From assembly GCA_047495785.1 (NCBI GenBank), contig JBLDXI010000103.1, positions 124,001-188,000 of the forward strand: 64,000 nt of DNA, given 5' to 3'. Shown here piece by piece: positions 4,874-30,720 of the stretch. The number at the start of each line of letters is the position of its first letter. Within the stretch, counting starts at the first letter, position 1. The stretch comes from Lepidodermella squamata (lineage: Eukaryota > Animalia > Gastrotricha). The notes below the pieces were generated by a model. It had not been told where the DNA came from. It ran no database searches and saw only the letters and a program-made list of their open reading frames with translations. A program made the translations under genes and the position numbers.

Positions 4874-6576
4874 TTACTCGCGAACAGCGCCCTGGTTTCC
4901 AGGCTGAGGACGAGGACCAGTTTGCGGGCGGCGGGTGGTTGGGCGGACTTGCGGACGAGGACGAGTCGTCGGCTGAGCGATTGGGCGGCGGGTAGTGCGA
5001 CCTCCTTGAACAGGGGCAGTTGTAGTTTCTTCAGCCGGCGGAGCTTCAGTCGCAGCAGTAGTGGTCGGCTGGGCTGGCTGCTGGCCACCCGGAATGAGAC
5101 CAGCCGTCTGCAGCGCACCAATGTTGCCTTGAGCCAGGGCGGCGACTTCCTCGCCGGTGAGCACGGTGTTGCAGACGAGGACGTTGTCGATGTTGCCGGT
5201 GAAGGCGCCGAGGGCCTGGTCGTCGCCGACGACGTACGGGCAGTGGGCGAGGGCGAGCGGGCCGGCGGCGGGCGCGCTGCCGACGAGGGCGCCGTTGACG
5301 AAGAGCTCGGCGAGCTGCGCGGTCGCGTTGAACACGACGCAGACGGCCGTCCAGCCGCCGTTGGTCGCCGGCGCCGGGGCGGTGAGGTTGGCGGAGGCGC
5401 CCGAGTCGGAGCGCAGGCTCGCGAACACGTTGTCGGTGGGCGTGACGCCGGCGATGAGCGTGTACAGCGTCGCCGCGGCGTTGTTGTTGTTCGACAGCAC
5501 GCCGGCCGACTGCGTGCACTGGAACGGGGCGGCGACGTTGCAACTTTGAAAAGTAAACCAAGGTCTCAGTAGAGTCCATCGGTCATGTAATAGTCTTACC
5601 GGTATTCGAAGCACCACGAAGCACCCTCGCCTGTGCCGAGCTCGAACGTCTTGAGGCCGGGGATCTCGAGGCGGCCGGTGTTGACCTGCAGCGAGCCACC
5701 AGTGGTGCCAGTCGCCGAGGCGGTCACGTCGAGCTGGGCGTTGCCGTAGGCGAAGGTCGGGAAGCGGTTGACGGACTGGTCCTCGAGGGAGGTGTCGAAA
5801 GGCAGCCAGAGGGCGCACTGGCGGGCATTCGAGCCAGTGAGCGGCGGCTCGGGCGTCGTCAGCACGACGGAGCAGGCGCACTCGGCGAGGCTGAAGGCGG
5901 TGCCGGGCGCGCAGGGCAGCGTCGAGTCGCCGAGTTGGAACGCGTCTTCGCGGTCGGGCAGCGCCACCAGGGTGTTGCCGAAGGCGTCCGAGCACGCGCT
6001 CGCGTTCAGACTCGCTGGGGCGGCCGTGGTCTGGGGCAGGGCGAGGCAGAAGCCGGTGCAGGTCTCGTCCGGCACGCACGTGCAAGTTGCGACGTCGATG
6101 CGCTCGCCAGACGGGCAGCAGTTGACAGTCTCCTGGCCGGTGGCGCCACACGTGAAGTACTGGCGGCAGCCTTGGCCGGGCAGTTGGTAGCAGCCGGCAG
6201 CGGCGATGGTCGGGTTCGAGCACGGCGAAGGCTGGCACGGCACTGGGCCCTCGGCGCGGCACGTCAGGCGAGCTTCGTCCCAGAAGGTGCCCGGCTGGCA
6301 CACCTGGAAGATGGCCGTCGCCGTCGTCTCGTTCAGGTACAGGCACTGGAAGTACGAGTGGCAGTCGAGCGGGTTCGCGAAGAAGTCCTTCTGCGCGGCG
6401 CGCGACAGGCAGTCGAAGCAGTACGTGTTCGCGTCGAACCCAGGCGCAGGGTTAGGGTTGTTCGGAGCAGGTGGGCCGGCAACTGGGGCGCGGCGCGTTG
6501 TTGTGCGATCGCGGGCAAACGCCGCATTAAGACAACCGGCGATCACGAAAGCTACTACAATCGAATATTTGAGCAT
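4874..6576 (-). CDS. Secreted chitin-binding (ChtBD2 x2-3) + LamG-like protein, copy A; exons 6576-5600 and 5543-4874, 548 aa
   Basis: Signal peptide; NPLDCHSYFQC...CQPGTFWDEARLTC peritrophin-A pattern followed by two related Cys modules. LamG/ConA-like motifs LWLPFD..LEDQSVN, WTAVCVVFN, LFVNG, FTGNIDNV. Pro/Thr/Arg-rich tail. A 56-nt phase-2 GT-AG intron joins the two ORF-track frames. Confidence 0.85.
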
Positions 6577-6662
6577 TTCTCAAAATGAATCGAATCAAAT
6601 CGAAAAGATGAATAAAAAAGGAATAAACAGTGATTGATGATTGAATTGGGGATTAGGGGGAA

Positions 6663-6704
6663 TTTTATAGTAGAAAATCCTTCGCATTGCGAAGCTCTAA
6701 TTGG
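6663..6704 (-). promoter_or_regulatory. CCAATTAG + TATAAAA promoter of copy A
   Basis: TATAAAA about 90 nt upstream of the ATG with CCAATTAG about 30 nt further up. The same pair lies upstream of copies D and E. Confidence 0.5.
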
Positions 6705-7652
6705 AGCGCTTGTTTTTCGGTCGCATTATTCCCAGCCAACACAACTGATCAGCTGACTGCACTACGCAGGATGACTCATTTGGTAGTAATTTTAATTGGG
6801 AGGCCAATAGCGGGATCGGTTCAGTGCGCTATTGCTTTGCCAAAATATCGAATTCGCTGATCACTGATCACGCCTTGTTCTGCCTGAATAAAAAATGGAC
6901 TGAACGATTGTGCGTTACGTCTGGTTAGAATTTCATGTAGCTTGGAAGGCCAACTCAGCAGAAGCGTTTGTGTATTTCTAATGATTTGATTCATAACATA
7001 ATTTATCTAAGAATACATTGTTGATGTTGTTGACAGGCATTATGCGAGGTCAGCTCAGTTTCTTTTGGTATCAGCGATTAAAATACTTTCATATATTCTC
7101 TATTCAGTCGATTGGAAAGGATCCATATTCAAATCCAGTGCTGTGAGTTATCCTAGGTTTCATATCAAGGTACTTCGCACTCATGACGAATTTCCATTCG
7201 TTTCTCACAATTCTCGCGATTCATACGGCCCAATTTTCGACTATAACGTACTGGCAAACATAAAATGCCTGTCTCGTGCAAGGAAAAGGGATCAACATAA
7301 GCATAAAATGAACTTCAGAATTCTCTTGCCACCTTTTCATTATCCGGGTTTGACGCCAATAGTGGACTTAAAATCTATCACCGTGCGTGGTATTTGACGC
7401 AAATGTCAAAAACCAGTCAAATTGATTTATCAATATTGAGTGGCGAAAACGGAGTTGTGAGACACGCGAAATATTGACGTGGTTGGGTTTTATTTGCAAT
7501 TAAACTCGGACGGATAATTAAACGCGGACAGTTAATAAATAATGCGCTCAACCAGACTCGATTGTACCTATATTAAACGTGCAAATCAGTATCCGCCAGA
7601 TCATTTTTGAAGTCAAATGCTGGGCATTGCATAGGCTAATAGTATTTAGAAA

Positions 7653-8804
7653 ATGGGAGCATTACTTGTGGCCTTTCTAACGGTGATGACTGGCGGCGCA
7701 GCTCAGTACATCGGTCAAGAAATGATCGAAGCATGCAGCCACTTGTTACCTGGGGTCTATGCCCCCCTCTGCCCACTAGGAGATTACGGAATTCCTGGAA
7801 GGAAGTGTCAAGTGTTGAACGTCATGGCTAGCTTTCTACCACATCGCTTTCACGCTATAAGTGACGAAGATGAGACTACGGCATTGACGGGCGCTTTGAA
7901 TGTCGAATACGTAGCGCCCTGCAAGAACTACACAGGCCGGCCTCCTCTCAAGTCTTACATCGAACGAGATAAAGTATGGCTGCCTCATTTTCACCACAAA
8001 AACGCGATTTCAGACTTTGCAATGTCGGATGGATTTACTGAAAGGAATTTTCTCTACCGCGACTCGATAGCCAATGATTCGATCGGGGTCTATTGGCAGA
8101 AGGTTGGCGTTTTCACCTCACTATGCCCGATGGAGTTCGAACTATTCCCCTTCGACACCCAGTCTTGCACAGTATCATTCGTCCTTCAAGAGAATAGCAA
8201 CGCCGTAGTATTCGTCTCCAGCTCTGCTTCGGCAGTAGATGCTGATTTCATGAGCCCAGGGTTGCAATGGACCTTCCTCGGATGGAACAAAAGTGTCAGC
8301 TTCATCAATGTGTTCGGCAATCGCAGCGCCGCCCATTTCACCTTCAATTTTCGTAGAAAGCCAGACTTTTACATCAATAACCTCATGATTCCTTGTTTCA
8401 TCCTGTCGAGCCTCGAGATCGCCTCGTTCCTTTTACTGCCAGATATACCTGACAGGCCGGTTTTCACAGTTACCATCTTGCTGGCTATGACGTTTTTACA
8501 GGGCAGCATTTTAAGCCGAATTCCGCCGAAACCACAGCGCATTTTCCTGAGCAACTACACAGATCTGTGCTCGCTGTTCGCCTGGGCTTGTACCATTTAC
8601 TCACTAGCCTCGTGTGGCTTCACCAGAGCTTACAAGCCATTTTTCAAGAGACCGGTGGGACTCTGCCTGTTGCCTTGTGGCGGTAAAGCCGGAATGACCT
8701 TGGGTAGATTTATCGATTCGTTCGCACTCGGAGTGGCCATTGCTATGTTTGTCTCAATCAATGGCTACGCCCTATCGGTAGCTATCAGCGTCGGTCACAT
8801 ATAA
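7653..8804 (+). CDS. Divergent intronless Cys-loop ligand-gated ion channel subunit, 383 aa
   Basis: Signal peptide, VWLP, Cys loop CPMEFELFPFDTQSC, FRRKPDFY pre-M1, four hydrophobic helices, very short M3-M4 loop. Confidence 0.88.
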   Translation: MGALLVAFLTVMTGGAAQYIGQEMIEACSHLLPGVYAPLCPLGDYGIPGRKCQVLNVMASFLPHRFHAISDEDETTALTGALNVEYVAPCKNYTGRPPLKSYIERDKVWLPHFHHKNAISDFAMSDGFTERNFLYRDSIANDSIGVYWQKVGVFTSLCPMEFELFPFDTQSCTVSFVLQENSNAVVFVSSSASAVDADFMSPGLQWTFLGWNKSVSFINVFGNRSAAHFTFNFRRKPDFYINNLMIPCFILSSLEIASFLLLPDIPDRPVFTVTILLAMTFLQGSILSRIPPKPQRIFLSNYTDLCSLFAWACTIYSLASCGFTRAYKPFFKRPVGLCLLPCGGKAGMTLGRFIDSFALGVAIAMFVSINGYALSVAISVGHI

Positions 8805-9793
8805 GCCAGGCTTAATGGAAGAATAACCATGATGATTTGATCTATCACTGACTCGTACCATCCGTCCATCAACTTAAATTAGTTCTAGGTAGCTAGTTCT
8901 AGTTCTAGGTGCACGCCGATCTCTACCGATGGTGAATATGTTATCTATCACTTCAATGTAAATATTGTTGTATGATTTATTAAAATTCGGATAGTTACTC
9001 CATCGTCTTGTGTAATTCCTAGAGCAAAAAGCGATTCAGCTTGGTATTCTGGACCTTTCATCCCTTCAGGGGAAAATCGGTGTGCATATTGCGCAGTGTG
9101 TGCGATGAACTATAGGATCCTCTAGCTTGGGGTACTTTTTGGAATTTTGGTTCCGATTTTATCGGACCAAGGGTTCCTCCCCAGTCAAAAGTCTGTAGGC
9201 CTAGACTAGGCTCCTGGGCCTATTATAGGCCCAATTGAACCGAGCCTAGGTCAGGTCTTGGCCTAGGCTAGGCCTAACAACAAAGCTTTGAACATGGCCC
9301 GTGAATGCTGGGCCTGGTCTAGGCCTAGCCAATTTTCTTGAGCTCTGGAGGTTCAGTACCTCACGTTGGTTTTATATTGATTCAATGACTCATCTATCTT
9401 CACGGTGTAACTTCGTTCAAAATGTCCCTAGAATCGAAATTAGAATAAGTGCTGTGTTCATCAGCCATTAAAAACTTTACTTGGGTTACCTTTTACCTTT
9501 GGCAACAAAAAAAACAATAAATTGCAAACAATATTTACGGTTTGCCCTAAAAAATTGGGTTCGCCCTCGAAAACCTGTCAATCCGATAATTCTTAATTTA
9601 TGAAAATAGTTGTGGCCAATTTAGCAATTAATCGGCGCAACACGAAACAAAGCGAAACGTCGAGTATATTTGAAGGTCAAACAATTTGGAAAATAACTAA
9701 CTTGTATCGATCGCAAAGTGGTATCCATCTGAGGCTTTGCAATTGACTAATTTTAAAAGGTTTTCATAATTATTTAAATAGTTTTTGAACAGT

Positions 9794-11097
9794 TTACTCT
9801 GCTGATGTCATTTTGCTGACGTATACAGTAATTACGATGAAACCGAAGAGAAATGCCGATAAACCGGCGACTAAATCAATTATTCTGATCACTCTCATAC
9901 CACATTTGAATACATTATTTCGGAGCACTAAACGCTTCATCGATGCTATTTTCGCTACAGAACAAGTAGCCATCGTGTAAATCGTGATCACAACACAAAT
10001 TATCATTAGATAAATGACAATGTTGATCAAATAAACTTCCTCGGCAGTTCGAGGTATCAACGTGAACACAAGAGTCAGTACAACTGCCATAGCTAGGTTA
10101 ACAGTTACGCAAAACGTCGGCCGATCCGGGTGTTTAGGATCCATTAGTAAGCCAGCAACTTGCAGTAAGAACAAAGTCAAAGTTGGCAGGAAGACGTTGC
10201 CAACATAGTACTGATACTTTCTATCTAGAATTAGTTTCAAAGTCACGTGATCCGAGCCACCAGCATTGAAAACAGTTCCGTTGTAGTTAACATAGCTCCA
10301 TATATCATCAGATCGAAGCGGGGGGTATGAACTTTGAACGGATATTTCTCCGAGATTGATCGCAACTTCGTTCCTTGCGTTTTCATTCTCAAACTCGTAA
10401 TTGCACCAAGCGGTGTCGAATGGGAATTTCGTGTATTTGAAGCCAAAACACATCGAGGTGAACGGCCGAACGCAGTAGATAAGAAATTTGGGATCAGGTC
10501 CACGGAACGGCCTGATTTTCACCGTACTTTCTCTGAAACAAGGGATGTTTGAAAATATTTCAAGTCCCCTCATTGTTAAATTACTCTCTCAAAGGTCTCG
10601 AGTTTCCGATCGCATTGATATGCTGCATATCTGGCCACCATACGTCCTCTTTTGGTACCTCAAATTGTATGCGGTCCAGCAGTGCCTGTCGGATATTTTT
10701 GTAATCGGGAAGCAGATCTGATCGAATATCACGGCCGCATGGCACGTCCCAAAAAATGCGGAATGTCATCGCGACTGTCATGCTGTAATTAAAGCCTCTA
10801 GAGTAAATTTATGAAAGGGCATTCAAACCTCATAGTTGCATCATTGACTTCGGTTATTTGTAGAATTCTCGAAATTAGGTAACTTTGAATAGGGCTCGAA
10901 AAGTTGCTTGTCTGCAAATGGTTTGCAGCTGGTAAATTGCTAACCTTGGCCATAGGACAGAGCTGGAAAAATCGGTCTTGCAGCTCTTTCAATTTGATTG
11001 GGTCGCCGAGCAGTTGCACAAAGTCGCCATTACTTTGTGCTTGGGTCAAAGCAAATAGCAGAACGAATTTTGCGACTTTCATTATCAAAGGCATCAT
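9794..11097 (-). CDS. Divergent Cys-loop channel subunit; exons 11097-10829, 10782-10585, 10532-9794
   Basis: Two frame-restoring GT-AG introns (46 and 52 nt) join three ORF-track fragments. Motifs VWWPD, CFGFKYTKFPFDTAWC, LDRKYQYY; four TM helices. Confidence 0.85.
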
Positions 11098-12372
11098 TTT
11101 AGAAAATTAGTAATGCAAATGTTCTACTGTATTATTATTAACAAGTGATAATGGAATTCAGTGACATTTTACGGCTCAGAGATGTGCTTCAAACTTCAAA
11201 ATATACCAGTAAAAGTAAATTCAGAAAGTTCGCCTTTTCAAAGCTGTTAATTTTTTGTTTGCATCAGATAATTTGTCACGCTATGGATTTTCGCAATTTT
11301 TCCTCAACTCTCTGGGCTAGAGGCGTTCTAAGATGTGGTTAGGCTTTGCTAGTTGCTGGATATTCAGAAATTCAGCGTTAAAATGAAGCTAACGTTTACA
11401 ATTTAAACTGAAAGTAGGAAACTGGAAGGGCGGTGCTTTAAGATTTAAATGACAGTTTAATGTGGAGGTCTGATGCATGAAAAGTCGCGAACAAACGAAA
11501 AAACCAGTTCTGAGGAGTATGAAAATTTACTCTTGCCCCCTGAATTTCTTGAACTGTACTGAGAAATCGGCACAACAGAAGCTTTCAATTATAAACGGAC
11601 ATGCGTTTTATAAACAAAGATTATCAAAAATTGATGACAGTGAACGTTATATGTTAGAGATCAGCTGACTTTTAACTTGCCGATGCATCACTGAAGGCAC
11701 TCATCGTTCGCATACCTCATACATATTTTATTAATAAGGGATAATTCGCGGCGCACTCTTTGATTATCTGAGCGCGTTATTAGCATGAGAAACACTTTGG
11801 ATGGAAGCTGACATTTTCAAATCTGTTGGGAGTCTTTGCAACTGCTGTAGCACAAAATTGCTCGATGAGTTTTATTTTTAAACTTCAAAAGAAATGAATA
11901 ATGACAATGCGCAGGATCGATGAACTGTGTTTAGTCATTTTTTAAGGCCAAAATACTTTGATAACTGTAACTTTTTCTGATGGAATGCCTAATTTTCCCC
12001 GCTTTTAATTGAACATTTTTGTTGAATGTTGATCGATTTGGGTGATTTTGCTCAATTTTTCCAATTTTCAGCTAGGAGTTAAAGGCGTCAAAAATGTTGA
12101 CATTAGGGTGAAATTCACAGCCTGCTATTTTTTTCAAAAATTAATTTCACTGGATTAGGGAATTTGTTGGAATATTGTTCCAATAATGTTTACAAAATCC
12201 GTCTTTCAACCGCATCTGAAACTGACGCTCTTTTCGCCGGTCCGCATTAATAGCCACAAATATGCCAAGTCAACGGTTGTTTTGTTTCGCAGCGGCATTA
12301 ATGCGACTCCCGCGTTAATTTTTGAATCGACCAATAGCGTGCGAGCAAATAATTGATAATTGTTAGAGAAAA

Positions 12373-12670
12373 CTACATTGTAGGCCGGGTTTGCAGGGTC
12401 AAAGTACAACTCTAAAAATAGCGCGTGACGGTTAAAAATAGCACTACTCTGTAACGTTCTATGTGTAGCCTTATTTTTCAAATTTTTCAGATTTTTCAAA
12501 CTATTTTAGAAATTCCACTATTAAAATAACCCATCATACTCAAGATACTTATCCAATAATCTGGAGAATCTGGAGAATTTGAAAAATTATTCTAACAACT
12601 AACTGCATTATTTCAATAGCGTGAATCATGCTTTGGACTTTGACCTTACGAAACCCGGCCTACAATGTAG
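12373..12670. repeat. Inverted repeat (about 38-bp arms), probable degenerate MITE
   Basis: CTACATTGTAGGCCGGGTTT (12373-12392) is the exact reverse complement of 12651-12670. Similarity continues inward through GGTCAAAGT. Confidence 0.6.
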
Positions 12671-12947
12671 CATTTCAAGGCTTTTTAGTGACCGGAGGAA
12701 ACCACCGCGGATCCGTAAATGTGCTTATTGCATGGGATTGTACTTCAGGCTCGAGTAAGTCAATTGCAGGAGCGTACGAGAATAAATAAAGAAATATGAT
12801 GAAACCTAAATCATATCATGGTTCTTAGCGCATGCCGAATTAGCCTCGTCCGCGGTGCCCACGTCATGCCGACCTGTGCTTTTCCTCACATTCGTAGCGT
12901 CAATTTTTGACCTGACTTTGAAGTATTTCGAAATTGAAGCTTTCAAA

Positions 12948-15594
12948 ATGACATCCGTATTCTACGCGCTCATACTGCTCTGTACTATCAAAGTAATTTT
13001 ATCGCAAAAACCGAATCGAATGTCAATCCTGCTGCTGAACCCTATCACAGGCAATCCACCATCAACAGGTCTTGGCTGCTATATCGGGGCCAAAATCGCC
13101 GTAGACACAGCTAACAATCGATCCGACTTTCTACCCGATTATCACATTGAAATCCAACACGAAGACGAAGCTGCTGGGAGCCAAGCAACCCGTCAAGCTG
13201 TTAACTACTTCCGAAGCTTCGAAAATAGCAACAGATCCAATGAGATTCAGTCACCCATTATTATGGGTCCAATATTTTCGGGTGGCTGCAAAGCCATGGC
13301 ACCAGCTTTGCATCACTTCAACGCCCTAACTTTTTCAATATGCTCATCCCCATTTCTAGCGGATCGCTCGAAATACCCGAATCTCTACTTGATGCGATCG
13401 ACAAGTCGCGTCCTAACAATGGCACAGGTTATGTTCATCAAAAATATCGGACGTTGGCAGAGGTTCGGCATTATCACAAATCCTGGGTCTGTTTACGACT
13501 ACACAACAGCAGCGATTTTACAAGACATTGCGTTGTACTCGGCCAATCTAACGATTGGATATTTCGACATAGTCATGGACATGGATGATGAGTACATAAT
13601 GGCGTTGAAGATGAGTGACGTCAGGATTGTATCGGTTGTAACTTCGATTGCGAGGCTGGTCTTTCGGTTTCTGTGTCAAGCTCATAAATTCGGGCTAACT
13701 GGGCCGAGATACGTTTTTCTAATGATTGGGAGCACGTATTCCGACCCTTTGACCATGGCGGATCCTGTACTACCAGGATGCTCGAAAGCAACTTTTATCG
13801 AACAAATGAAAGTAAGTGACAAGCGGTATTTTTGAGCGGGAAAATATGGGCAGACTGTTTTTCAAAGATTTTTTGAATTTTAAGAAATTGAAAAAAATTC
13901 TGTAATTAGAAAATCTCAGCTGAACAATTTTGAAAGTTAAATTTTGAAAATTTGAAAATTCATTGGATCCATTTTAAAATTGATTAGTTTCACGACTATA
14001 ATTATTGTCGATTTACAAGTACTTCTTCTTTTTACAGTATTCCTACTGGATTGCTCCGATCATGTCTACCCTTGATGCTGATATCGTGTCTCCGTTGAAC
14101 CATACGCTGGCTAATTTCGATCAAATCTACGATCGATATTCAAACTACGCACCTCGCACGTTCGACTACGAGTGGCGCTTTTTGTGCTACGACAACATGA
14201 TGCAAACCCTCCTGGCGCTCGATAAATCCGAGAATCAGCTGAAGAACCTAAATCTCAGCCTTAAAAACACGAAAACTCACGCAGAACTAATCAGCCATCT
14301 CGTCAACCAAACTGCGATGAACATCGAATACTTCGGGCTGAGAGGCGGGAAGTTCAGCTATAATAAGCAGGGTGAGGTCGATGCTGACGTCCAAACCATT
14401 AGCTACTGGACCCCTCAGAACAAACTTCAATCCCTCTACACAGTTCACCAATTCTCAAACGCGTCAGGTTACACTTTAGGTAGCTATTGGTTAAGGAAAA
14501 ATCAGGGCATTAATTGGCTGACCAATGACGGCAAACCTCCAAAAGATCGGGTTGGGTTTATTCAGATCTTGGACGTAATTCCAACTTCAGTTCTATACGT
14601 GGTCATATCTGTATCCATCGGCCTTAATTTGGCCATTCTCGCTGGAATCGCGCGGGCTCTTTTAGCAAAAAACGAAGTCCAAACAACGGAAAGTTTTCGA
14701 CTGAATTATTTCGGGCTGATCGGATGTATCACAACGAGCTTGGCTGCCATCACTTTTTCAATAGATCAGCTTCAAGTTTCCGTATTAATTTGGTATCTTC
14801 GTCGCATTCTTCTAGCTTTGGGATTGTCGCTGATCTTCGCAGCTGTGTCTATTCGGCCTATCACGCTGTCGGTCAATATGAAAGTTAAATGGGTTCAGAT
14901 ACCAGGGCTTCATAGTACGACGTCATTCCGAGAAGAAAGTAACTCTCAGCGAAAAAATAGTAACTCTCAGCGGAAGCTTTCAACGACAAGAAGCCGCATA
15001 ATTCAGGTCAGGCCGTTTCAGGAATCTCGATCCTCTCAGCTGGAAAGTGTCTCTCAGATACGACCGGCTTCGTCAATACCCACCAATCCTAAACAAACCA
15101 TTGAAAACATGTTGATAATTGAAAAATTAAGCTTCAACTTAGCTGGCATCGTTGTTCTGCTTGACTCAATTCTAGTTGCGATCTGGCTTGGGCTTTCCAA
15201 TGTGTCTTGCGACCTTGCTAAGTTGTCATCTGTGCTTCAAGAAATGGCGGACATAGTTGTAGAAACTCGTCATATCAAATGCGAGTCTTCAACTGATGAA
15301 ACAGCTTGGATATACGCGTTGTGCGGCGTGAATGCGTTCTTATTGGTTTGTGGAGCAGTTGCATTGGTGAAATTGCGACACATTGCAAAGGCTAGAAAGG
15401 TAGACATTCCTCAGCTGCTCTTCACATCAGTCGCTGTTGTAAATTCAGTTTTGATTTTTCTGGCCGTTTTGCTTGTTACTGCGATTTTGCAGAACCTTGT
15501 GAATAGGCATGTCGCAATAGCTTTTTTCGGACTTATCTTGTCAGCTACAGCGGCTCTGACCTGGTTAGTGCCAACTTTTCAATTCAAAGAATGA
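12948..15594 (+). CDS. Class C GPCR, GABA-B-receptor-like; exons 12948-13811 and 14038-15594, about 806 aa
   Basis: Signal peptide; Venus-flytrap motifs AVDTANNRSDFLPDY, GPIFSGGC, SSPFLADRSKYP, FLCQAHKFGLTGPRYVF, YFGLRG; W...GKPPKD stalk with no Cys-rich domain; seven hydrophobic segments; phase-0 intron 13812-14037. Confidence 0.85.
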
Positions 15595-15950
15595 GTTTGT
15601 TCATTCCAAAATGAATTCAATAAGTCATTCATAACTGGTTTTTTTTCAAACAAAGGTCGACAGGTCCGCAATATCAGAATTTTAATTCAGCATATCGGTC
15701 ATGTAATGTGTGAGCTTATCGTATAAAATTATCGTAAAAGTTATGAACAAAACTTTTTATCAAAACAGTATACTCTTCAAAGAGTTATAACTCCTTCGAT
15801 TAAAACCCCAGCAAACAACGGTTGCTGGGCTTTTGGTGAAAGGACCTTAACCTGCAATGATATTTAAAAACGGATATTAACTTGGGGCAAAGCAAGCATT
15901 TCAAAATTCATTCCGAAGCCAGACTGCTGACTGATGAACTGCTTTTCCTC

Positions 15951-18251: not shown

Positions 18252-18641
18252 TAAACTCTTGCATTTTTCTCGAATTCGGTTTTTTGTATTTCAATTGTCC
18301 AATCGTCTTTATTCCTCTTGTCCAATGCTGCTGAAGATGGTTGCTGGTCATACGCTCCTAGTGAACCGGGTAACACTTTCCAACACAAATAAAATGATAA
18401 AATGATTATCCTGGAACCTGAATTCTGAAACAATATCGAACCGGGAATGTAATATTCGGTTTCGCTAATCACACGCTCTTGCCAGGCTATTTATGCTATA
18501 CTTCAATTTTAAAAGAAAATCGTCAACGGAAAAATAAAATACTGCCATCTATTTAATCATGTCTTGCATATAATTTTAAAATTCGGCGAATATATAATGT
18601 TTAATTTCCAAACACTTGTTTTTCAATTTACATTGCATGTT

Positions 18642-19823
18642 TCAGTAGCGAACTTTCGACAGGACGAAGGTAGCATACGCCTGCAGACCAGCCAACCAGA
18701 TCACGAACACGAAAAAAGCCCCAGTGTCGACAAGTCGGCAAAACCTAACGTATTTAGGCTGGCCATGGCGGGTGTACACCAGAATTTTCCGACGAGCCTC
18801 ATCGCCGAAAATATCGATAACACCAGCCATTACCACGGAGTAAAGCGACACGAAAAGCGCCAACACGATTTCATTCATGATGTAGCTCGTCATGAAAACA
18901 CTTTGCGACGAACGGGGGGTAATTTCCAGCACGTGGTCGTGTTGCATGATGAACGCTAGCAGGATAGTTACGGCGTACTGCGCTCGTTTAGTCGAATCTG
19001 GCGGAATCAGTGAAGCAATGCTAATCAGCAGCGACAGTATCGCGTTGATAAAAATAATGCTTGTTGTGTAGTACCATGGCGATCTGTGGAGCTTAATGTA
19101 AAACGTGACTTCATCATAGCTGTGAGGCCCAAAGAAGTCGCGAATTGTTTTCGCCTCGAAGCCTCTGAAATTCCAGCTTGATGAGGCTGGAAAAACTATG
19201 CCTTCCATTTGCATAATCTGACTTTCGTTGCTGATTTCGAGATATTTCGAAGTGACAAAAGACGTAATCGTGATGGGGCAAGACTGCGAATCGAACGGGA
19301 AGTCGGCTAGATCAAGTTCGCAGCTAGTTAGCATATCCCCGACTATCAAATACTCGAACATTCCAGTCTCAGGCTGCAGCATCATCATTCTCGTCGTTTT
19401 CTCAGTCATCCCCGTACTAAGAAATGAGTTCCGATTGACGAGCTGTGGCTTCCAGTATTGCGTCTCATTAAGCATTATCGGCACCCCCTCCGTAGTGTAA
19501 TTTAGTTCCCGAGCGATCTGCCGAACGCAAGGCACGAAGTAATTCATTGACACCCCTGCTGTAATACTCATCGCTCCCTTCACATCGTCAATATCGCGAA
19601 ACCGGTCGACTGTGACGACGACCTTGACTTGGGTTGCAACTTGTTCATCTTCTTGCGGGCTCATGGCCTCGGTTGATAGGAGACATCTAGCTCGAATTTC
19701 GCGGCGGAAAATTGTTGAAATTGGCGGGTTGGTCTCCTCATCACTCTTGTTGCTGAACTCACATACTTGTCCCAAGCTAGTCCTTAGAATAGCGATTAAA
19801 AAAGAAATAGATAAAAGCCGCAT
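18642..19823 (-). CDS. Divergent intronless Cys-loop channel subunit, 393 aa
   Basis: Signal peptide, DIDD, YWKPQL, Cys loop CELDLADFPFDSQSC, LHRSPWYY, four TM helices, short M3-M4 loop. Confidence 0.88.
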   Translation of the reverse strand: MRLLSISFLIAILRTSLGQVCEFSNKSDEETNPPISTIFRREIRARCLLSTEAMSPQEDEQVATQVKVVVTVDRFRDIDDVKGAMSITAGVSMNYFVPCVRQIARELNYTTEGVPIMLNETQYWKPQLVNRNSFLSTGMTEKTTRMMMLQPETGMFEYLIVGDMLTSCELDLADFPFDSQSCPITITSFVTSKYLEISNESQIMQMEGIVFPASSSWNFRGFEAKTIRDFFGPHSYDEVTFYIKLHRSPWYYTTSIIFINAILSLLISIASLIPPDSTKRAQYAVTILLAFIMQHDHVLEITPRSSQSVFMTSYIMNEIVLALFVSLYSVVMAGVIDIFGDEARRKILVYTRHGQPKYVRFCRLVDTGAFFVFVIWLAGLQAYATFVLSKVRY

Positions 19824-20524
19824 TAGGAATTTAATAATAAATGACCATATATTTTTTCATTTTGAAGGGCTAAAGATCGATGTTAGTCGCAGTGGGTCAC
19901 ATAAAACAGTAAATTATTTACGTTTATCGCATTTCGGCTCTGAGTTTAACGCAGAATTTTCGAACTTTCCAATGAATTTGTGCCGTAATTTCATAAAAGG
20001 CTCTTATCATCGAACTCGAGGTGAAGTTCGCGAATTATAAGGCAATCGATTATGCACCCATCGACAGTTGGCTTCGCTCCCAATCCATCTATCCCAGCTA
20101 TCATACGTGATATTTAATGTGTCGTAGCAATTTGTGTAATAGCCTTTATTCTATGAATCACCCTTTCTCGTTGACTCCTAAAAGATTCCGAACAGTACCA
20201 AAACCAAAGCCAAAACCCTATCCCAATAGTATTCCATGAAAGCAAACGAGACTTTTCGATGCAAAATAATGGACAATGTTTCGGTGTCGTTAGCATGACG
20301 TCAGTTCCGCCTCGTTCAAGCATTTCAAAATTCAGGTTTCAGGAGGATAACTGCTACGAAAACGTTCATTTTTCGGGTAAATTCTACCCGCCATCCGTTG
20401 AACTGGCTGAGTACTATCATCAGCCACGATCGCCATGAGTGGACGAAAGGAATAAAGTAAAAATAAATATTATACAATTAATAACAGCCAATTCCTGTTA
20501 TACTCGCCAAATTGATCACATCGC

Positions 20525-20564
20525 TAGCGTCGTTAAATAACTCGGATTTAGGCTTGTTTACATC
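20525..20564. mobile_element. Truncated terminal fragment of the hairpin/MITE family seen at 22974-23088
   Basis: TAGCGTCGTTAAATAACTCGGATTTAGGCTTGTTTACATC matches the reverse complement of about 23048-23087 with three mismatches. Confidence 0.6.
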
Positions 20565-20605
20565 TATTTCAAGGTGATAGGTGACAAGTAAAAAAGCTTT
20601 TGTTT

Positions 20606-22905
20606 TTATCTGGCAAGCGTAATATTCATTTTCTTCCCTGCTTGAATAATCGCTACGAGGATACGGCGATGACTCATATGACAAACTATAGCAATGATTT
20701 CAGCAAAGTCTTGGCTAAATGACAGGTTTGGCCTGATTTGGGAAAAAAGACTTCGATTTGTCAACATCATTATTTTATTTCAGCATATCAATCATATCAT
20801 TGTTAGCAAGCTGCTTATCAAAGCTGTTCATAGAATCATGTGGGAATAAATTATCATAGAAGTTATTCAAAAGTTCTTTCAAAAGTATCGACAATTTTTA
20901 CTCGCGAATGGCGCCCTGGTTACCAGGCTGAGGACGAGGACCAGTTTGCGGGCGGCGGGTGGTTGGGCGGACTTGCGGACGAGGACGAGTCGTCGGCTGA
21001 GCGATTGGGCGGCGGGTAGTGCGACCTCCTTGAACAGGGGCAGTTGTAGTTTCTTCAGCCGGCGGAGCTTCAGTCGCAGCAGTAGTGGTCGGCTGGGCTG
21101 GCTGCTGGCCACCCGGAATGAGACCAGCCGTCTGCAGCGCACCAATGTTGCCTTGAGCCAGGGCGGCGACTTCCTCGCCGGTGAGCACGGTGTTGCAGAC
21201 GAGGACGTTGTCGATGTTGCCGGTGAAGGCGCCGAGGGCCTGGTCGTCGCCGACGACGTACGGGCAGTGGGCGAGGGCGAGCGGGCCGGCGGCGGGCGCG
21301 CTGCCGACGAGGGCGCCGTTGACGAAGAGCTCGGCGAGCTGCGCGGTCGCGTTGAACACGACGCAGACGGCCGTCCAGCCGCCGTTGGTCGCCGGCGCCG
21401 GGGCGGTGAGGTTGGCGGAGGCGCCCGAGTCGGAGCGCAGGCTCGCGAACACGTTGTCGGTGGGCGTGACGCCGGCGATGAGCGTGTACAGCGTCGCCGC
21501 GGCGTTGTTGTTGTTCGACAGCACGCCGGCCGATTGCGTGCACTGGAACGGGGCGGCGACGTTGCAACTTTGAAAAGTAAACGAAAGTTTTAGTAGAGTC
21601 CATCGGTCATGTAATATAGTCTTACCGGTATTCGAAGCACCACGAAGCACCCTCGCCTGTGCCGAGCTCGAACGTCTTGAGGCCGGGGATCTCGAGGCGG
21701 CCGGTGTTGACCTGCAGCGAGCCACCAGTGGTGCCAGTCGCCGAGGCGGTCACGTCGAGCTGGGCGTTGCCGTAGGCGAAGGTCGGGAAGCGGTTGACGG
21801 ACTGGTCCTCGAGGGAGGTGTCGAAAGGCAGCCAGAGGGCGCACTGGCGGGCATTCGAGCCAGTGAGCGGCGGCTCGGGCGTCGTCAGCACGACGGAGCA
21901 GGCGCACTCGGCGAGGCTGAAGGCGGTGCCGGGCGCGCAGGGCAGCGTCGAGTCGCCGAGTTGGAACGCGTCTTCGCGGTCGGGCAGCGCCACCAGGGTG
22001 TTGCCGAAGGCGTCCGAGCACGCGCTCGCGTTCAGACTCGCTGGGGCGGCCGTGGTCTGGGGCAGGGCGAGGCAGAAGCCGGTGCAGGTCTCGTCCGGCA
22101 CGCACGTGCAAGTTGCGACGTCGATGCGCTCGCCAGACGGGCAGCAGTTGACAGTCTCCTGGCCGGTGGCGCCACACGTGAAGTACTGGCGGCAGCCTTG
22201 GCCGGGCAGTTGGTAGCAGCCGGCAGCGGCGATGGTCGGGTTCGAGCACGGCGAAGGCTGGCACGGCACTGGGCCCTCGGCGCGGCACGTCAGGCGAGCT
22301 TCGTCCCAGAAGGTGCCCGGCTGGCACACCTGGAAGATGGCCGTCGCCGTCGTCTCGTTCAGGTACAGGCACTGGAAGTACGAGTGGCAGTCGAGCGGGT
22401 TCGCGAAGAAGTCCTTCTGCGCGGCGCGCGACAGGCAGTCGAAGCAGTACGTGTTCGCGTCGAACCCAGGCGCAGGCGGTGGAGGGTTCGGGTTCGCAGG
22501 AGGCGATGGTGGGCCCGCAACTGGCGCGCGACGCGTTGTAGTGCGATCACGACCGAAAGCTGCGCCTAGGCAGCCAGCAAGTAGGAAAGCTACTAAAACA
22601 CTTTTCATGATGATATTTGCCGAAGCTTATTTAGCAGCTTGTTCGCTATAGGCTAATACTGAAAAATTGATTATCGATTGGAGATGATCAACATCCCATT
22701 CTCCGGCCTATTTATTAAGGGTCTCATTTGGGATGAACTTTGTTATGCGTGCTAATTATTTGGCTGTAAGCTGCGTCTGGGGCAAATTGGCGCAACCATC
22801 CACAATCGGAATAACGGAACCAATTCAATTTGAATGATCCAGTTCCACAGCTTGTATTAGATTTCAAAACATGGCATATTATGTAATCAGCTGAATTTCG
22901 AATTC
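20606..22905 (-). repeat. Right arm of about 2.3-kb inverted duplication (copy C with flanks)
   Basis: Reverse complement of about 15951-18251. Confidence 0.9.
20898..22608 (-). CDS. Secreted ChtBD2 + LamG protein, copy C; exons 22608-21626 and 21567-20898, 550 aa
   Basis: Leader and tail as in copy B (T3S change); 58-nt intron as in copy D. Confidence 0.87.
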
Positions 22906-22973
22906 GAAGTAAAATCAGTCAATCCTAGCTTCGAAATGATCTTTCATCTGATGTATAGTTATTTTGTATAGCA

Positions 22974-23088
22974 TTAGCGTCGTTGAATAACTTCGTTGAA
23001 CGTCGTTGTTTACGTCAGTTCAAAATTGAAAGTGACATTTTGGAACTGACGTAAACAAGCCTAAATCCTAGTTATTCAACGACGCTAA
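22974..23088. mobile_element. 115-bp hairpin, MITE-like element
   Basis: Perfect 19-bp terminal inverted repeats TTAGCGTCGTTGAATAACT / AGTTATTCAACGACGCTAA plus an inner inverted pair TTGTTTACGTCAGTTC / GAACTGACGTAAACAA. Confidence 0.7.
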
Positions 23089-23687
23089 CGATATATCGAA
23101 GTTCGTCTTGTGGCTTGGAATTGAGTTTAAAATAAATTCATTCATCAAAATTCAAAATCGATATAAATCGATAGAACGAGCAAATGCACTAACGTCAAAA
23201 TTTTGCAGCAACCATGTGGAAATAACTGGAAATATCGCAGTCGTTACTAAAATTTCTAGAATTAAATTTTAATTTTCTTCAGTAGGTAATTTTGCTCGGA
23301 GCCCTTGGAAACTTAGCCCAGGAACTCGTGTGATTTAATCAATTCCCTTGGATATGTTTTTCAACAAATTGAGAGGAAGTTGACCGTAAAACGTAAAATT
23401 CGGCAGACAGGTTCACTGCTCGCCAAAAATACTAGAAAGCCCGTGCCCAGTTATCACTCCAAGTTGGCCTTTTTTGCCCATTTTGCAAGAATCAGCAACG
23501 GCACTTAAACGCCACATTTTAATTTATTATTTTACGCTGGAGGCATAATATCGATATCAACTTCGTCTTCATTACCAAATTTTGTTGAAAAATAACTCGG
23601 ATTTATCAATGTAGAATAATTTATTTCATCATAATTTTCAAATTCAGATTTTTCGATCTTAACAGAAAGGTTATTGCTCAGATGTTT

Positions 23688-26600
23688 TCAAGTACGGATA
23701 ATGCCTTGGTTGCCCTGAGGCCGTTGCGGCCGGCCGCCTGGGGGCTCGGTTGGAGGCGCAGCCGGCGTCGTAGTCTCAGGTTGCGGCGGCGCCGCGCCAC
23801 GCGACGGAATCAACCCCTCCGCCTGCAGCAGTGCCAAATTGCCAGCAGCCAACGCAGCGACCTCGCCAGTCGTCAACGGCAGGTTGCAAATCAGCACGTT
23901 ATCGATATTGCCGACAAACGCGCCCAGCACTTGATCATCGCCGACGACGTACGGGCAGTGGGCGACTGCGGGCGGGCCGTTCAGGGTGTCGCTCGCCAAC
24001 AATACGCCGTTGACGTAGAGCTCGAGCACAGAGATTTGCTGGTCGTAGACAACGCAGGCTGACTGCCAGCCGTTTGCGACCGGGGCGTTGATCATCATGG
24101 CGGATTGGTTGGTGCGCACGTTGCCTTGCAGGTTGTTCGTGCCGTTGATGCCGGCGATGATTGTGTACAGCGTTGCAGCGGCGCTGTTGCTGTTCGACAA
24201 AATACCGCCGTTTGTGTTGCACGAGTACGGAGCAGTTGTGCCACAGCTAAGTTGACAAGAAATAGAATAAAATTACAGTAGGACGAATTTTCTCAATTTT
24301 TTGAATGTGACCAGTTGAATCGGTAATACAGCCCCATAAGCAGGGTGCGATCTTGGATCCCCGAGCTGCCAGGGATGGAAAATATTTTTTGCTGCATTTG
24401 CCAAGATGACTAGTCATTTCGGCTAATCACCGAGCTAAGCGAGAAAATTTTGGAGATTTTCCGCTAAAACACGCTCCAGAACCAGAACCTAAGTTCTGGG
24501 ACACGTTGTTTTAAAAAATCTCAATCTGTAGGTCAATTTTTAAATCAAATATTTTGTAGGACAAATTCGAACAAGTCGAGTTTGAACAAAGGACCTTTCC
24601 GAACTTTCAGATGAATAGCTCTGTGGAAACCAAAAATATAATGAAATCGTCAATTTAATAATTTGAAGTTTTTCTAAAATTTCTCGAAAATAATAAAAAA
24701 TTTGGAAATTTCAAGTTAGGTTTCCCAAACTATATCGTAATGCAATCGGTGTAATATTATTGAACTTGATAATTGCTCGGGAAGCTTCTCCTTTTTAAGA
24801 ATCAGATCAATCGCCGATCAGCCGATAGCAAGCCTGAAGCAGAAAAATTCTACAAATTCTGCAAAAGTTGTAGATCGGAATTTGCGATAGAAAATAGCCC
24901 ATGGAATTTCAAAGACATTGAAATAATGATTAATCGGTAGATGTCAGTATCACAAGTACCACTAATACGCTCTGGAATTTTTTTGAGTATTTATAGTTGA
25001 GATCTTACCGGAAAGAGAAGCACCATGAAGCGCCCTGGGGGTTGCTCAGCTGGAAGCTCTTCAAGCCCGGAATTTCCAGCCGGCCATCATTGACGAACAA
25101 CGACCCGCCAGGGCTATTCACCGTATTAGCCGGGTCGAACTGAGCGTTGCCGTAGGCGAAGGTCGACAGCTGGTTGATGGACTGATCGGCTAGGCTGGTG
25201 TCAAACGGCATCCAGAGCGAGCACTGGCGCCCTGAGGAGGCGACGACGTCGGGCGCCGGCGGCAGGACCACTGAACAAGCGCACTCGATTAGGCTGAAGG
25301 TGGTACCAGGGGCACAGGGCAGGTCGTAGTCGCCCAGGCGGAACGCGTCCGGGCGGTCTGGGTTGGCAACCAGGATGTTTCCGAAAGAATCAGTGCAAGC
25401 CGTAGCGTTGCTCGTTGGCGCTTGGGTGACCTAAATTTGAAACACGAAAAAAGGGAATTCATTTTTGTGACAAAATTTGATTGAAAATTTTGAAATTGAA
25501 TTTGAAAATTGAACTTGAAAATTGAATTTGAAAATTGAACTTGAAAATTGAAAATTAGAAATTGAAATTTCGATTTTGAATTTTAGGTACTAATTTTGAA
25601 ATTACAGGGTTTTTTATTTTCAATTCAATTAAAAGAACTTGTTGAAAATTTCAATTTTTCAATTTCAAGATTTTCAATTTTCAAATTTTCAAATTTTTCA
25701 TTCAATTAAAATATCGAAGGGAAGATTAATGAATTTTGAATTCAAATTAAATTTTTTTTTTATTTTTCAAATTGTAAAGAATTATAAGGCATGTTTTACC
25801 TGAGGTAAAGCGAGGCAGAAATCTCGGCACGACAAATCAGCGACGCAATCGCACGTATTGGGCTGATAGCGGTAGCCAGTCGGGCAACAGCGAGTTTCAT
25901 TGAAGGCGCAGGTGAAGAATTGGCGGCACGATTGGCCGGGGATTTGGTAGCACCCGACGGCGGCGATGGCCGGGGTTTCGCAGGGTGACGGCTGGCACCG
26001 CACCGGGCCCTCGACTTGGCACGCCAGGATCGATTCATCGAAAAATGTACCAGGCGGGCAGAATTTCAACGTTGCTGAAGCATTGTTAGCATCCAGATAT
26101 TGACACTGAAAAAAATTCAAAAATTCAAATTCAAAAAAATGAAAAAGAGGAAAATTGAAATTGGTCATCACATAAAAAAAATGGAATAGGTAATTATTTT
26201 TCGGCGGAATTTTCGAATTTTCAATTTTACGAAACTTGCGAGTCACTTTTCTAAGATGGCCTTGAAAATGGATTTCAAGAAAATACGCAATATCTTCAGT
26301 TGCTGAAATAAGTTCTAATTTTTGGATTAAAAATCTCGAACATTGAGAGGAAAAAATTAAAATCTTTTAAAATTTAAAAAATCAATTTAAAAATTCAATC
26401 TGCCAAAATTTTTCAAAGTTAAATTTAAACGAGAGTTTGGATGACCTTAGAAATTATGATTTTTTTGGAATATTTCTTACCTGAAAGTAGCTGTGGCAGT
26501 CGAGGGGATTGATGAACAAGTCCTTGACGTTGGTTCGCATCAAGCAGTCGAAGCAGTAGTCATTCGCGTTGAACCCAACGTCATTTATCGGGACAGGAAC

Positions 26601-26699
26601 AGGCAGACCGGCCGTGGTCGTTCGTGGCCGGCCAAGCGTGAAGCCAACCAAGCATGACGAAGCGACTAGAAAAACTGCTAAAGAAAATAAATTCTTCAT
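23688..26699 (-). CDS. Divergent paralog of the ChtBD2 + LamG protein, copy E; exons 26699-26481, 26105-25800, 25430-25009, 24246-23688, 501 aa
   Basis: Colinear similarity (YCFDCL, NPLDCHSYFQC, CPPGTFFD, CSLWMPFDTSL, GRLEIPGLK, HCPYVVGDDQ). Three GT-AG introns give a continuous frame; the last sits at the same phase-2 position as the intron in A-D. Confidence 0.87.
25480..25705. repeat. Intronic degenerate (TTGAAAATTGAA)n tandem tract followed by its inverted counterpart
   Basis: Repeats at about 25480-25570 and complementary TTTTCAA repeats at about 25650-25705, inside intron 2 of copy E. Confidence 0.55.
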
Positions 26700-28629: not shown

Positions 28630-28816
28630 CAGTTTAATACTGCATTATCGATTTACATTAAATTTGACTATAGTATTGTCTATAACAGATCCAGCTTTGA
28701 TTTGTTCCTGTTTTTAATCAAATAATAAAATTTAATTACGAAATAGCAAGATTTTGCAAATATAGGAAGAATTGGGTTATGCGAACAATCTGTTATTAGG
28801 GCTATGTGAGCGCGGA

Positions 28817-28864
28817 CCAATTAGCCTGATAACGCATCAAGAAATGTGATTCTTGACTATAAAA
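28817..28864 (+). promoter_or_regulatory. CCAATTAG + TATAAAA promoter of copy D
   Basis: CCAATTAG at 28817-28824, TATAAAA at 28858-28864, ATG at 28947. Confidence 0.5.
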
Positions 28865-28946
28865 GCGAAGAAATGAAACCGATAGAATCATCAACAGCTT
28901 AATAAGCATTTCTTCTCCATTTGATAATCAAGAAACGATTTCGATA

Positions 28947-30720
28947 ATGATCCGATCATCGATTGTAGTAGCTTTTGTGATCGCCGGTTGTCTTGATGCG
29001 GCGTTTGCCCGCGATCGCACTACAACGCGCCGCGCCCCGGTCGCTGGCCCACCTGCTCCGAACAATCCTAACCCTGCGCCTGGGTTCGACGCGAACACGT
29101 ACTGCTTCGACTGCCTGTCGCGCGCCGCGCAGAAGGACTTCTTCGCGAACCCGCTCGACTGCCACTCGTACTTCCAGTGCCTGTACCTGAACGAGACGAC
29201 GGCGACGGCCATCTTCCAGGTGTGCCAGCCGGGCACCTTCTGGGACGAAGCTCGCCTGACGTGCCGCGCCGAGGGCCCAGTGCCGTGCCAGCCTTCGCCG
29301 TGCTCGAACCCGACCATCGCCGCTGCCGGCTGCTACCAACTGCCCGGCCAAGGCTGCCGCCAGTACTTCACGTGTGGCGCCACCGGCCAGGAGACTGTCA
29401 ACTGCTGCCCGTCTGGCGAGCGCATCGACGTCGCAACTTGCACGTGCGTGCCGGACGAGACCTGCACCGGCTTCTGCCTCGCCCTGCCCCAGACCACGGC
29501 CGCCCCAGCGAGTCTGAACGCGAGCGCGTGCTCGGACGCCTTCGGCAACACCCTGGTGGCGCTGCCCGACCGCGAAGACGCGTTCCAACTCGGCGACTCG
29601 ACGCTGCCCTGCGCGCCCGGCACCGCCTTCAGCCTCGCCGAGTGCGCCTGCTCCGTCGTGCTGACGACGCCCGAGCCGCCGCTCACTGGCTCGAATGCCC
29701 GCCAGTGCGCCCTCTGGCTGCCTTTCGACACCTCCCTCGAGGACCAGTCCGTCAACCGCTTCCCGACCTTCGCCTACGGCAACGCCCAGCTCGACGTGAC
29801 CGCCTCGGCGACTGGCACCACTGGTGGCTCGCTGCAGGTCAACACCGGCCGCCTCGAGATCCCCGGCCTCAAGACGTTCGAGCTCGGCACAGGCGAGGGT
29901 GCTTCGTGGTGCTTCGAATACCGGTAAGACTATATTACATGACCGATGGACTCTACTAAAACTTTCGTTTACTTTTCAAAGTTGCAACGTCGCCGCCCCG
30001 TTCCAGTGCACGCAATCGGCCGGCGTGCTGTCGAACAACAACAACGCCGCGGCGACGCTGTACACGCTCATCGCCGGCGTCACGCCCACCGACAACGTGT
30101 TCGCGAGCCTGCGCTCCGACTCGGGCGCCTCCGCCAACCTCACCGCCCCGGCGCCGGCGACCAACGGCGGCTGGACGGCCGTCTGCGTCGTGTTCAACGC
30201 GACCGCGCAGCTCGCCGAGCTCTTCGTCAACGGCGCCCTCGTCGGCAGCGCGCCCGCCGCCGGCCCGCTCGCCCTCGCCCACTGCCCGTACGTCGTCGGC
30301 GACGACCAGGCCCTCGGCGCCTTCACCGGCAACATCGACAACGTCCTCGTCTGCAACACCGTGCTCACCGGCGAGGAAGTCGCCGCCCTGGCTCAAGGCA
30401 ACATTGGTGCGCTGCAGACGGCCGGTCTCATCCCGGGTGGCCAGCAGCCAGCCCAGCCGACCACTACTGCTGCGACCGAAGCTCCGCCGGCCGAAGAGAC
30501 CACCACTGCCCCTGTTCAAGGAGGTCGCACTACCCGCCGCCCCATCGCCCAACCGACTCGACGTGGCCCTATGACTCTGCCCACTCGATCTCCGCCCCAA
30601 GGTGGATCCCGCACTACCACTCGCCGCGCGCAAGCCGCCAATCCCACCACCCGCAACCCCCATGCTGGTCATGGCCCGCGTCCTCAGCCTGGCACCCAGG
30701 GTGTCGTCCGCGAGCATTAA
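28947..30720 (+). CDS. Secreted ChtBD2 + LamG protein, copy D; exons 28947-29923 and 29982-30720, 571 aa
   Basis: A-type leader (SIVVAFVIAGCL..PPAPNNPNPAP), C-type 58-nt intron, unique longer C-terminal tail. Confidence 0.87.

Follow-up and report, generated by a model that had tools for sequence, protein, structure and literature searches.

The window analysed here, a stretch of 64,000 nucleotides from the gastrotrich Lepidodermella squamata (contig JBLDXI010000103.1), carries four copies of one gene, A to D, in alternating orientation, with positions and strands as the initial annotation had described them. All four (4/4) have a single intron and an open frame. The genes of the region are as follows.

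4874..6576, minus strand: copy A, 548 aa (exon 1 6576-5600, intron 5599-5544 of 56 nt, exon 2 5543-4874), with an a-type leader and the common tail.
7653..15594: genes of the A-B spacer, namely two Cys-loop channel ORFs (7653-8804, plus strand; 9794-10573, minus strand) and a class C GPCR (12855-15594, plus strand).
16251..17959, plus strand: copy B, 550 aa (intron 17234-17289, 56 nt), with a b-type leader and the common tail.
18642..19823, minus strand: intronless Cys-loop channel ORF of the B-C spacer, which a B-C crossover would flip.
20898..22608, minus strand: copy C, 550 aa (intron 21625-21568, 58 nt), with a b-type leader and the common tail.
23688..26699, minus strand: paralogue E, within the C-D spacer, encoding 501 aa with ~59% identity to A-D (introns 26480-26106, 25799-25431 and 25008-24247).
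28947..30720, plus strand: copy D, 571 aa (intron 29924-29981, 58 nt), with an a-type leader and its own longer tail.

The proteins encoded by A-D comprise a signal peptide, CBM14 chitin-binding modules, a LamG domain and a Pro/Thr tail. For copy A both Pfam matches lie above the cut-off (CBM_14, E 1.9e-5; Laminin_G_3, E 4.3e-15), a VWA domain is absent from the Pfam scan, an N-terminal helix is predicted (5-19), and fold matches are to EHEP, Avr4 and Blo t 12. On this domain content A-D are members of the LamG3 class of the Pif/BMSP family, predicted secreted chitin-binding proteins, having in common with that class the signal peptide, chitin-binding domain, LamG and lack of VWA (PMC10543319). 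They are about 32% identical to a chiton protein, the only named relative examined.

Paralogue E was not mentioned in the initial annotation. It is sister to A-D (support 96/89) in a tree made up solely of relatives and this one chiton protein. E shares about 70% DNA identity with A-D, has long introns and is not homogenised. Its third intron occupies the same position as the A-D intron, which is conserved in distant relatives that also lack E's first two introns. At the relatives' loci L003-L007 there are tandem paralogues about 70% alike with GC3 of 0.38-0.46 and no homogenised inverted copies, and no orthologous cluster in another species was found among the relatives' loci examined. Run X2, at a depth of only 2-4, differs from the core by 3-6% over a portion in which A-D are identical.

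Within A-D a homogenised core is flanked by diverged leaders and tails, and long perfect tracts join inverted neighbours.

5103..6450, minus strand: core in A.
16383-17730: core in B.
22476-21127: core in C.
29073-30422: core in D.
17240..17323, plus strand: 84-nt island at which B and C differ by 6 events (intron and one silent site), carrying the A+B versus C+D signal.
4899..6450, minus strand: perfect A=B tract of 1,552 nt, covering the core, the intron and most of the tail.
21127..22476, minus strand: perfect C=D tract of 1,350 nt, covering the core with its intron.

The core begins at codon 43, the predicted start of the folded region, and fills alignment columns 505-1854 (1,350 columns), the first 850 of which are invariant across A-D. 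What had been annotated as an identical core of about 1.3 kb measures 1.35 kb with variation confined to the island, and the proposed grouping of intron alleles and the CAG/CAA site as A+B versus C+D agrees with all six events in the core (a 2-nt indel, four intron substitutions and the CAG/CAA codon). The leaders had been thought to pair A+D against B+C, as 35/35 informative leader events do, and the tail does set D apart from A, B and C. No site in the four-copy alignment groups A+C against B+D, and the informative splits are strongly blocked along the gene (runs test p 1e-5). The claim that no single tree fits therefore survives in part: leader and island conflict, whereas the tail split is one-versus-three and fits any topology, so that the tail says nothing on topology and the tree conflict comes down to leader against island. 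This conflict can be explained by a single conversion event.

Silent sites show how abrupt the change is. Between A and B, synonymous differences affect 14/28 leader codons and 0/426 core codons (Fisher 3e-19), and between A and D they affect 6/37 leader, 1/426 core and 20/67 tail codons. When core codons are compared with those of leader and tail, the identity of the paralogues, silent sites included, goes far beyond what the age of the copies allows. Permutation tests on runs of shared sites give 5e-5 for A-B and 1.5e-4 for C-D; the tract edges are sharp, and groupings conflict along the gene. B and C share perfect tracts of 981 nt and 928 nt, the latter extending 292 nt into 3' non-coding DNA, within a larger inverted repeat.

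15938..18254, plus strand: left arm of the B/C inverted repeat, with a 5' flank about 12% diverged and with 16260-17239 and 17324-18251 identical to C.
20603..22919, minus strand: right arm of the B/C inverted repeat.
18271..18430, plus strand: degenerate extension of the B/C homology, aligned in reverse to a segment near 20495-20323 (z 10).
20520..20572: one half of a 130-nt hairpin element that is present in full at 22967-23095; this insertion lies directly past the point where perfect B/C identity stops.

Flank homology had been assigned to B and C only, and it is indeed limited to them; it is uneven, however, at about 88% upstream, 100% over 292 nt downstream and then degenerate but significant. 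The degenerate homology beyond the perfect tract shows that this pair is an old one. Among A, D, E and B/C no other flank similarity stands clearly above shuffles, except for weak B/C-to-E 3' signals (z ~4). Capture of copy C by a transposon, between the two pieces of the hairpin element, is not supported, since B/C homology goes on past 20520-20572, and the half copy is therefore a later insertion.

On these observations A-D probably belong to an old local family of secreted chitin-matrix genes of LamG3 type, whose identity is maintained by ectopic gene conversion acting passively. Recurrent conversion between inverted copies had been proposed in the initial annotation, and this part of the proposal is supported by the long, sharp-edged perfect tracts, by the contrast between 0-1 of 426 core codons and half of the leader codons, by the extension of a perfect tract into the non-coding DNA of the otherwise old B/C pair, and by a rise in GC3 confined to the tract. 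The reading is drawn from one haplotype. According to it, the intron and tail patterns would go back to two recent tracts, one between A and B and the other between C and D; core GC would have been raised over many rounds by mismatch repair biased toward G/C, and E would have left conversion after diverging. Indels and insertions are known to end conversion, and dosage favours it (PMC3924837); here the putative benefit is likely to be one of dosage, a single protein being supplied from promoters of three types that are unrelated to one another.

The annotation had named crossover beside conversion, and for the crossover and inversion half there is no positive evidence. Crossovers between inverted copies would flip the spacers and swap promoters and leaders against tails, with the flips segregating in populations. 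The geometry permits this, in that perfect identity of 0.86-1.55 kb links inverted copies 3-22 kb apart and, beside a 2.35-kb spacer, the two B-C arms match perfectly over 928 nt, and crossover resolution is a known outcome in palindromic pairs (PMC3924832). Furthermore, the source run's tail-allele depths of ~182 for D-type and 124 for A/B/C-type (5027, 5093) misfit a 3:1 ratio on both chromosomes; these depths, however, are unphased contig means and fit conversion equally well, and they hint at polymorphisms common to several paralogues. Against crossover, B and C each keep a B/C-type promoter and 3' flank and the flanks of A and D are private on both sides, so that A-B or C-D exchange is not needed. 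No inverted-type joint occurs among the listed source-run contigs, which cannot span the core. Had the 2.3-kb B-C spacer flipped, or the entire A-D interval, one haplotype would bear no trace of it. We regard an involvement of inversion as possible but rather unlikely. A programmed "system" finds no backing, as there is no recombinase-like gene among the scanned ORFs of the window and, among its repeats, no short crossover sites or shared short inverted sites flanking the copies. Improbable, too, is the combined proposal that in a gastrotrich the GC bias of ectopic conversion is strong enough to shift the amino-acid composition of a matrix protein, tracts differ between one animal's chromosomes, and alternating Pif/LamG3 quartets recur under selection with flipping spacers that re-pair promoters and tails.

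GC3 is 0.92 in the core versus 0.45-0.55 at the gene ends (p 1e-20 or less), and the rise, which takes place within a single reading frame, coincides with the edges of the tract. Compared with E, the A-D core is shifted toward G/C at same-residue codons (58 vs 11, p 8e-9) and at codon positions 1-2 (109 vs 53, p 1e-5), and its four-fold sites hold 151 C, 96 G, 18 T and 4 A. The pattern fits GC-biased conversion, and converted regions elsewhere show a GC3 rise (PMC2720389). It should be noted that GC3 is also raised in the core of E (0.74, versus 0.56 at its ends) and of a relative, L001 (0.72 versus ~0.47), and part of the GC step therefore does not come from conversion. Non-coding DNA of the tracts is not GC-enriched (intron 0.39/0.33, B/C 3' flank 0.34; other short introns 0.37, a crude estimate). 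The core intron is only 56-58 nt long and is itself the part that escapes four-way identity.

Alternatively, the GC-rich identical core could reflect optimal-codon selection in a very highly expressed gene together with recent duplication or a single sweep. The raised core GC3 of E and L001 and the unenriched intron favour this, as does the report that in Drosophila the paralogues that had undergone conversion were no richer in GC than members of the family that had not (PMC3924832). However, codon selection cannot leave 426 codons without a single difference next to a leader that is half saturated, nor does it account for a GC step at tract edges within one frame, for both C and G endings at four-fold sites, or for the shift at positions 1-2; recent duplication is ruled out because the flanks are unrelated. 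We therefore consider this explanation quite improbable.

It is very improbable that the pattern is an artefact of amplification chimeras, of collapsed or polished repeats, or of haplotypes joined head to head with A/D and B/C as alleles. The L. squamata assembly does derive from a single, highly heterozygous animal whose DNA had undergone whole-genome amplification, a chimera-prone method (PMC11660948), and a mirrored join of haplotypes would put the leaders in just this a-b-b-a order. No homology at DNA or protein level, however, links the A-B spacer to the C-D spacer or one outer flank to the other, and with spacers and outer flanks unrelated both a mirror duplication of an A-B unit and a head-to-head haplotype join are rejected. 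In the probable source run the 3' flank of A is present in two versions (~54 depth each, 59 substitutions in 419 nt), the second of which is not D's flank. Source-run contigs cover the core at a depth of 315-368 with no differences, that is 6-7 times one haplotype; the copies are therefore real. B/C homology fades with distance and is interrupted by an insertion, a pattern that no chimera would leave, the core also occurs in a second study's run at ~94-99.6% identity, and 13 kb reads are long enough to cross 1.7-kb repeats. Homogenisation through reverse-transcribed mRNA, to which the single intron of A-D against three in E, the mostly coding identity and the intron as the only differing spot in the core might point, is scarcely credible, and a retrocopy origin or cDNA-templated conversion is rejected, since the ancestral intron, conserved in distant relatives, is kept in all four copies and lies within the A=B and C=D tracts, and the B=C tract passes the stop by 292 nt.

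Bacterial shufflons and antigenic-variation cassettes are programmed inversion or cassette systems. The likeness of A-D to them is only outward, in exchangeable ends around a constant core; a recombinase and short crossover sites are lacking among the scanned ORFs and repeats of the window, and so are silent donors: each of the four copies is intact and they encode one and the same core protein, which leaves little room for generating diversity. In bivalves, Pif/LamG3 clusters have been described as products of reverse tandem duplication (PMC10543319), which we count as a likeness to the A-D cluster, although the gastrotrich host has no mineralised shell. The locus marks a probably high-demand, predicted secreted chitin-binding protein in a phylum with few such studies.

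As far as its sequence can tell, the locus is an ordinary case of concerted evolution of the Drosophila Amy/Hsp70 kind, by a textbook mechanism. Like Amy-p/Amy-d, Hsp70Aa/Ab and Ba/Bb, A-D are linked, mirror-oriented paralogues evolving in concert by apparent ectopic conversion that is mostly limited to coding DNA, with flanks that evolve independently and an arrangement in which crossover would yield inversions (PMC3924832). The mosaic mammalian pairs BMP8A/B, DDX19A/B and TUBG1/2, and the histone genes (Galtier 2003, cited in PMC2720389), likewise have higher GC3 in the homogenised part, for the pairs relative to the diverging part; tract introns of the mammalian pairs are GC-enriched (PMC2720389), unlike the short intron of A-D. 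The present host, moreover, is a small invertebrate, and E, as a control from within the cluster, reveals a shift at codon positions 1-2 as well. With converting and non-converting paralogues side by side, sharp edges and a GC step in one reading frame, the locus is a natural experiment suited to testing the GC bias of ectopic conversion in an invertebrate, a question left open by the Drosophila review (PMC3924832). In contrast to the Amy and Hsp70 pairs, it presents a chain of four converting copies, spaced at 3-10 kb and separated by genes for unrelated receptors; the cluster also contains a fifth paralogue that does not convert, and leader and tail codons fall outside the four-way tract.

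The mosaic along the four neighbouring secreted chitin-binding gene copies A-D is real, and ordinary ectopic gene conversion explains it well. Self-comparison of the window delimits a 1.6-1.7 kb unit in four copies with 96.5-98.2% identity, together with a diverged fifth paralogue, E (~70% identity), between C and D:

4874-6576, minus strand, copy A
16251-17959, plus strand, copy B
20898-22608, minus strand, copy C
28947-30720, plus strand, copy D
23688-26699, minus strand, paralogue E

Each of A, B, C and D is intact, with two exons and 548-571 codons, and Pfam matches above cut-off place CBM_14 in exon 1 and Laminin_G_3 in exon 2. The predicted structure of exon 1 comprises an N-terminal helix, a disordered stretch (residues 21-42) and, from about residue 45, small beta-rich modules that in the model match the chitin-binding folds EHEP, Avr4 and Blo t 12. 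LamG3-type proteins are defined by chitin-binding and LamG domains without VWA (PMC10543319), and under this definition the A-D gene falls into the LamG3 type within the Pif family. The intron acceptor is the uncommon AAG (5544-5546 in A and the matching places in B, C and D), confirmed at the sequence level by the reading frame and by homology with E and relatives.

Paralogue E is also intact, encoding 501 aa that are 59% identical to A-D, and the third (last) of its three introns occupies the A-D intron position, which is used in two distant relatives as well. In a tree with 15 relatives A-E form a single clade, with branch lengths of 0.58 for E and 0.21 for A-D. The first two introns of E, which neither A-D nor the relatives L003, L004 and L007 have, may be gains in E. 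The relatives' loci L004:546-2659, L005, L007 and L006:10001-12345 (compact-genome animal) carry the same module plus a further domain, either VWA before the module (a tandem pair, ~68% alike) or trypsin after it.

Aligning all four copies shows the core, the homogenised middle of ~1.35 kb, to be invariant over its first 850 columns; a variable patch follows, the 84-nt island (17240-17323 in B), and then 407 further invariant columns. All core variation (a 2-nt indel, four intron substitutions and one silent change) separates A+B from C+D, as the initial annotation had proposed for the intron alleles and the silent site. Its grouping of the leaders, the 5' coding ends, as A+D versus B+C is borne out by 35 of 35 informative events, and the tail, the 3' coding end, sets D apart as it had stated. 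Informative sites are clustered in blocks (p 1e-5), and none in this alignment unites copies that lie on the same strand (A+C or B+D). It is true that no single tree fits, but the conflict is confined to the leader versus the 84-nt island; the tail split is compatible with any topology and is thus no evidence of conflict.

The longest perfect tracts are 1,552 nt for A=B, 1,350 nt for C=D and 981 nt for B=C, and a further B=C tract of 928 nt runs from the island to 292 nt beyond the stop. Synonymous differences between A and B affect 14 of 28 leader codons and 0 of 426 in the core; between A and D the counts are 6/37 in the leader, 1/426 in the core and 20/67 in the tail. Protein constraint cannot produce this contrast between leader and core. 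An old ((A,D),(B,C)) background with two recent tracts, A-B and C-D, would suffice for the mosaic.

The flanks of the inverted B/C pair are evidence for conversion that is free of coding constraint. The 5' flanks diverge by ~12% across 320 nt, and the near 3' flanks match perfectly over 292 nt, past which a degenerate match runs on for ~175 nt (z 10), interrupted in the C flank by a fragment of a hairpin element. Conversion predicts this picture, an old duplicate whose perfect patch stops beside an insertion (PMC3924837). The hairpin element itself (130 nt with nested inverted arms, 22967-23095; half copy at 20520-20572) is probably a small non-autonomous mobile element.

Base composition follows the same tract. 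GC at third codon positions (GC3) is 0.92 in the A-D core versus 0.45-0.55 in the A-D leader and tail, 0.74 in the E core and 0.42-0.57 in neighbouring genes, stepping up at codon 43-46 and down near codon 455-470. Among same-residue codons of A and E, G/C is confined to A in 58 and to E in 11; in changed codons, positions 1-2 give a G/C count of 109 to 53, and core codons use both C and G endings. Such a GC3 signature has been attributed to GC-biased conversion (PMC2720389), which we consider the probable main cause of the core GC excess. However, the short core intron shows no GC richness, and a smaller core-versus-ends step exists in E and one relative too, so expression-linked codon bias probably contributes.

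Crossover between inverted copies, giving inversion, is a possible by-product rather than a demonstrated function. The geometry of the copies allows it, and inversion is described as an alternative outcome for mirror pairs in Drosophila (PMC3924832). However, after an A-B or C-D crossover the B/C promoter and the B/C 3' flank would no longer lie together, as they still do in both B and C; a B-C flip would turn just the 2.35-kb spacer and the Cys-loop gene in it, and it would take an outgroup to see an A-D flip. A scan of ORFs and repeats in the window found neither recombinase-like ORFs nor short sites shared at the copies. Four copies would alternate strictly by chance in one case out of eight, and with E included the strand order is - + - - +. 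Of the conversion and inversion 'system' originally suggested, conversion is supported by the perfect tracts and the silent-site contrast; a dedicated system is not supported.

Mis-assembly, a concern of the initial annotation, is countered by read-contig depth and by the surroundings of the copies. The published Lepidodermella squamata assembly (157 contigs, 43% GC, 3% heterozygosity) was built from a single animal, whose amplified DNA yielded 12 Gb of long reads (PMC11660948); sequencing run X1, searched as contigs, is probably its source and so not independent of it. In X1 the A 3' flank occurs in two versions (depths 54.1 and 53.7) and the core contigs, with zero differing letters, reach 319, 315 and 368, or 6-7 single-haplotype units, which, contig depth being a crude measure, agrees with four loci on two chromosomes and clearly exceeds two loci. 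A false head-to-head haplotype join is excluded, since spacers and outer flanks share no relation. D-type tail letters are found in X1, and at two tail sites they make up ~60% of summed depth versus 25% under the assembled 3:1 layout, only a hint of a different mosaic on the other chromosome. Contigs lose minor variants and, none spanning a whole copy, are unphased. Run X2, from a separate study, yields low-depth, unspliced contigs of essentially core only (~94-99.6% identity).

Local heterozygosity is very high in non-coding 4067-4481, where two equal-depth versions differ by 59 substitutions and 10 gaps in 419 nt. A Cys-loop channel ORF (7653-8804) draws many diverged X1 contigs of high summed depth (7876-8745), which indicates a family with multiple copies at other places in the genome. 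The window also holds an intronless ankyrin-repeat ORF (67-1707, plus strand; ~ten 102-nt repeats), a MITE-like inverted repeat (34720-35581; 197 nt, the arms 90% alike with 468 nt between them), a very large PKD1-like polycystin gene split by short introns (35800-58168, plus strand; C-type lectin, PAN, PKD and polycystin channel domains) and, at 58455-60386 (plus strand), a trypsin-like ORF with an ankyrin ORF after it.

The residual value of the A-D locus is that GC bias and inversion polymorphism could be tested cleanly on it. The nearest known parallels are the Drosophila Amy and Hsp70 palindromic pairs, in which concerted evolution is restricted to coding DNA (PMC3924832).
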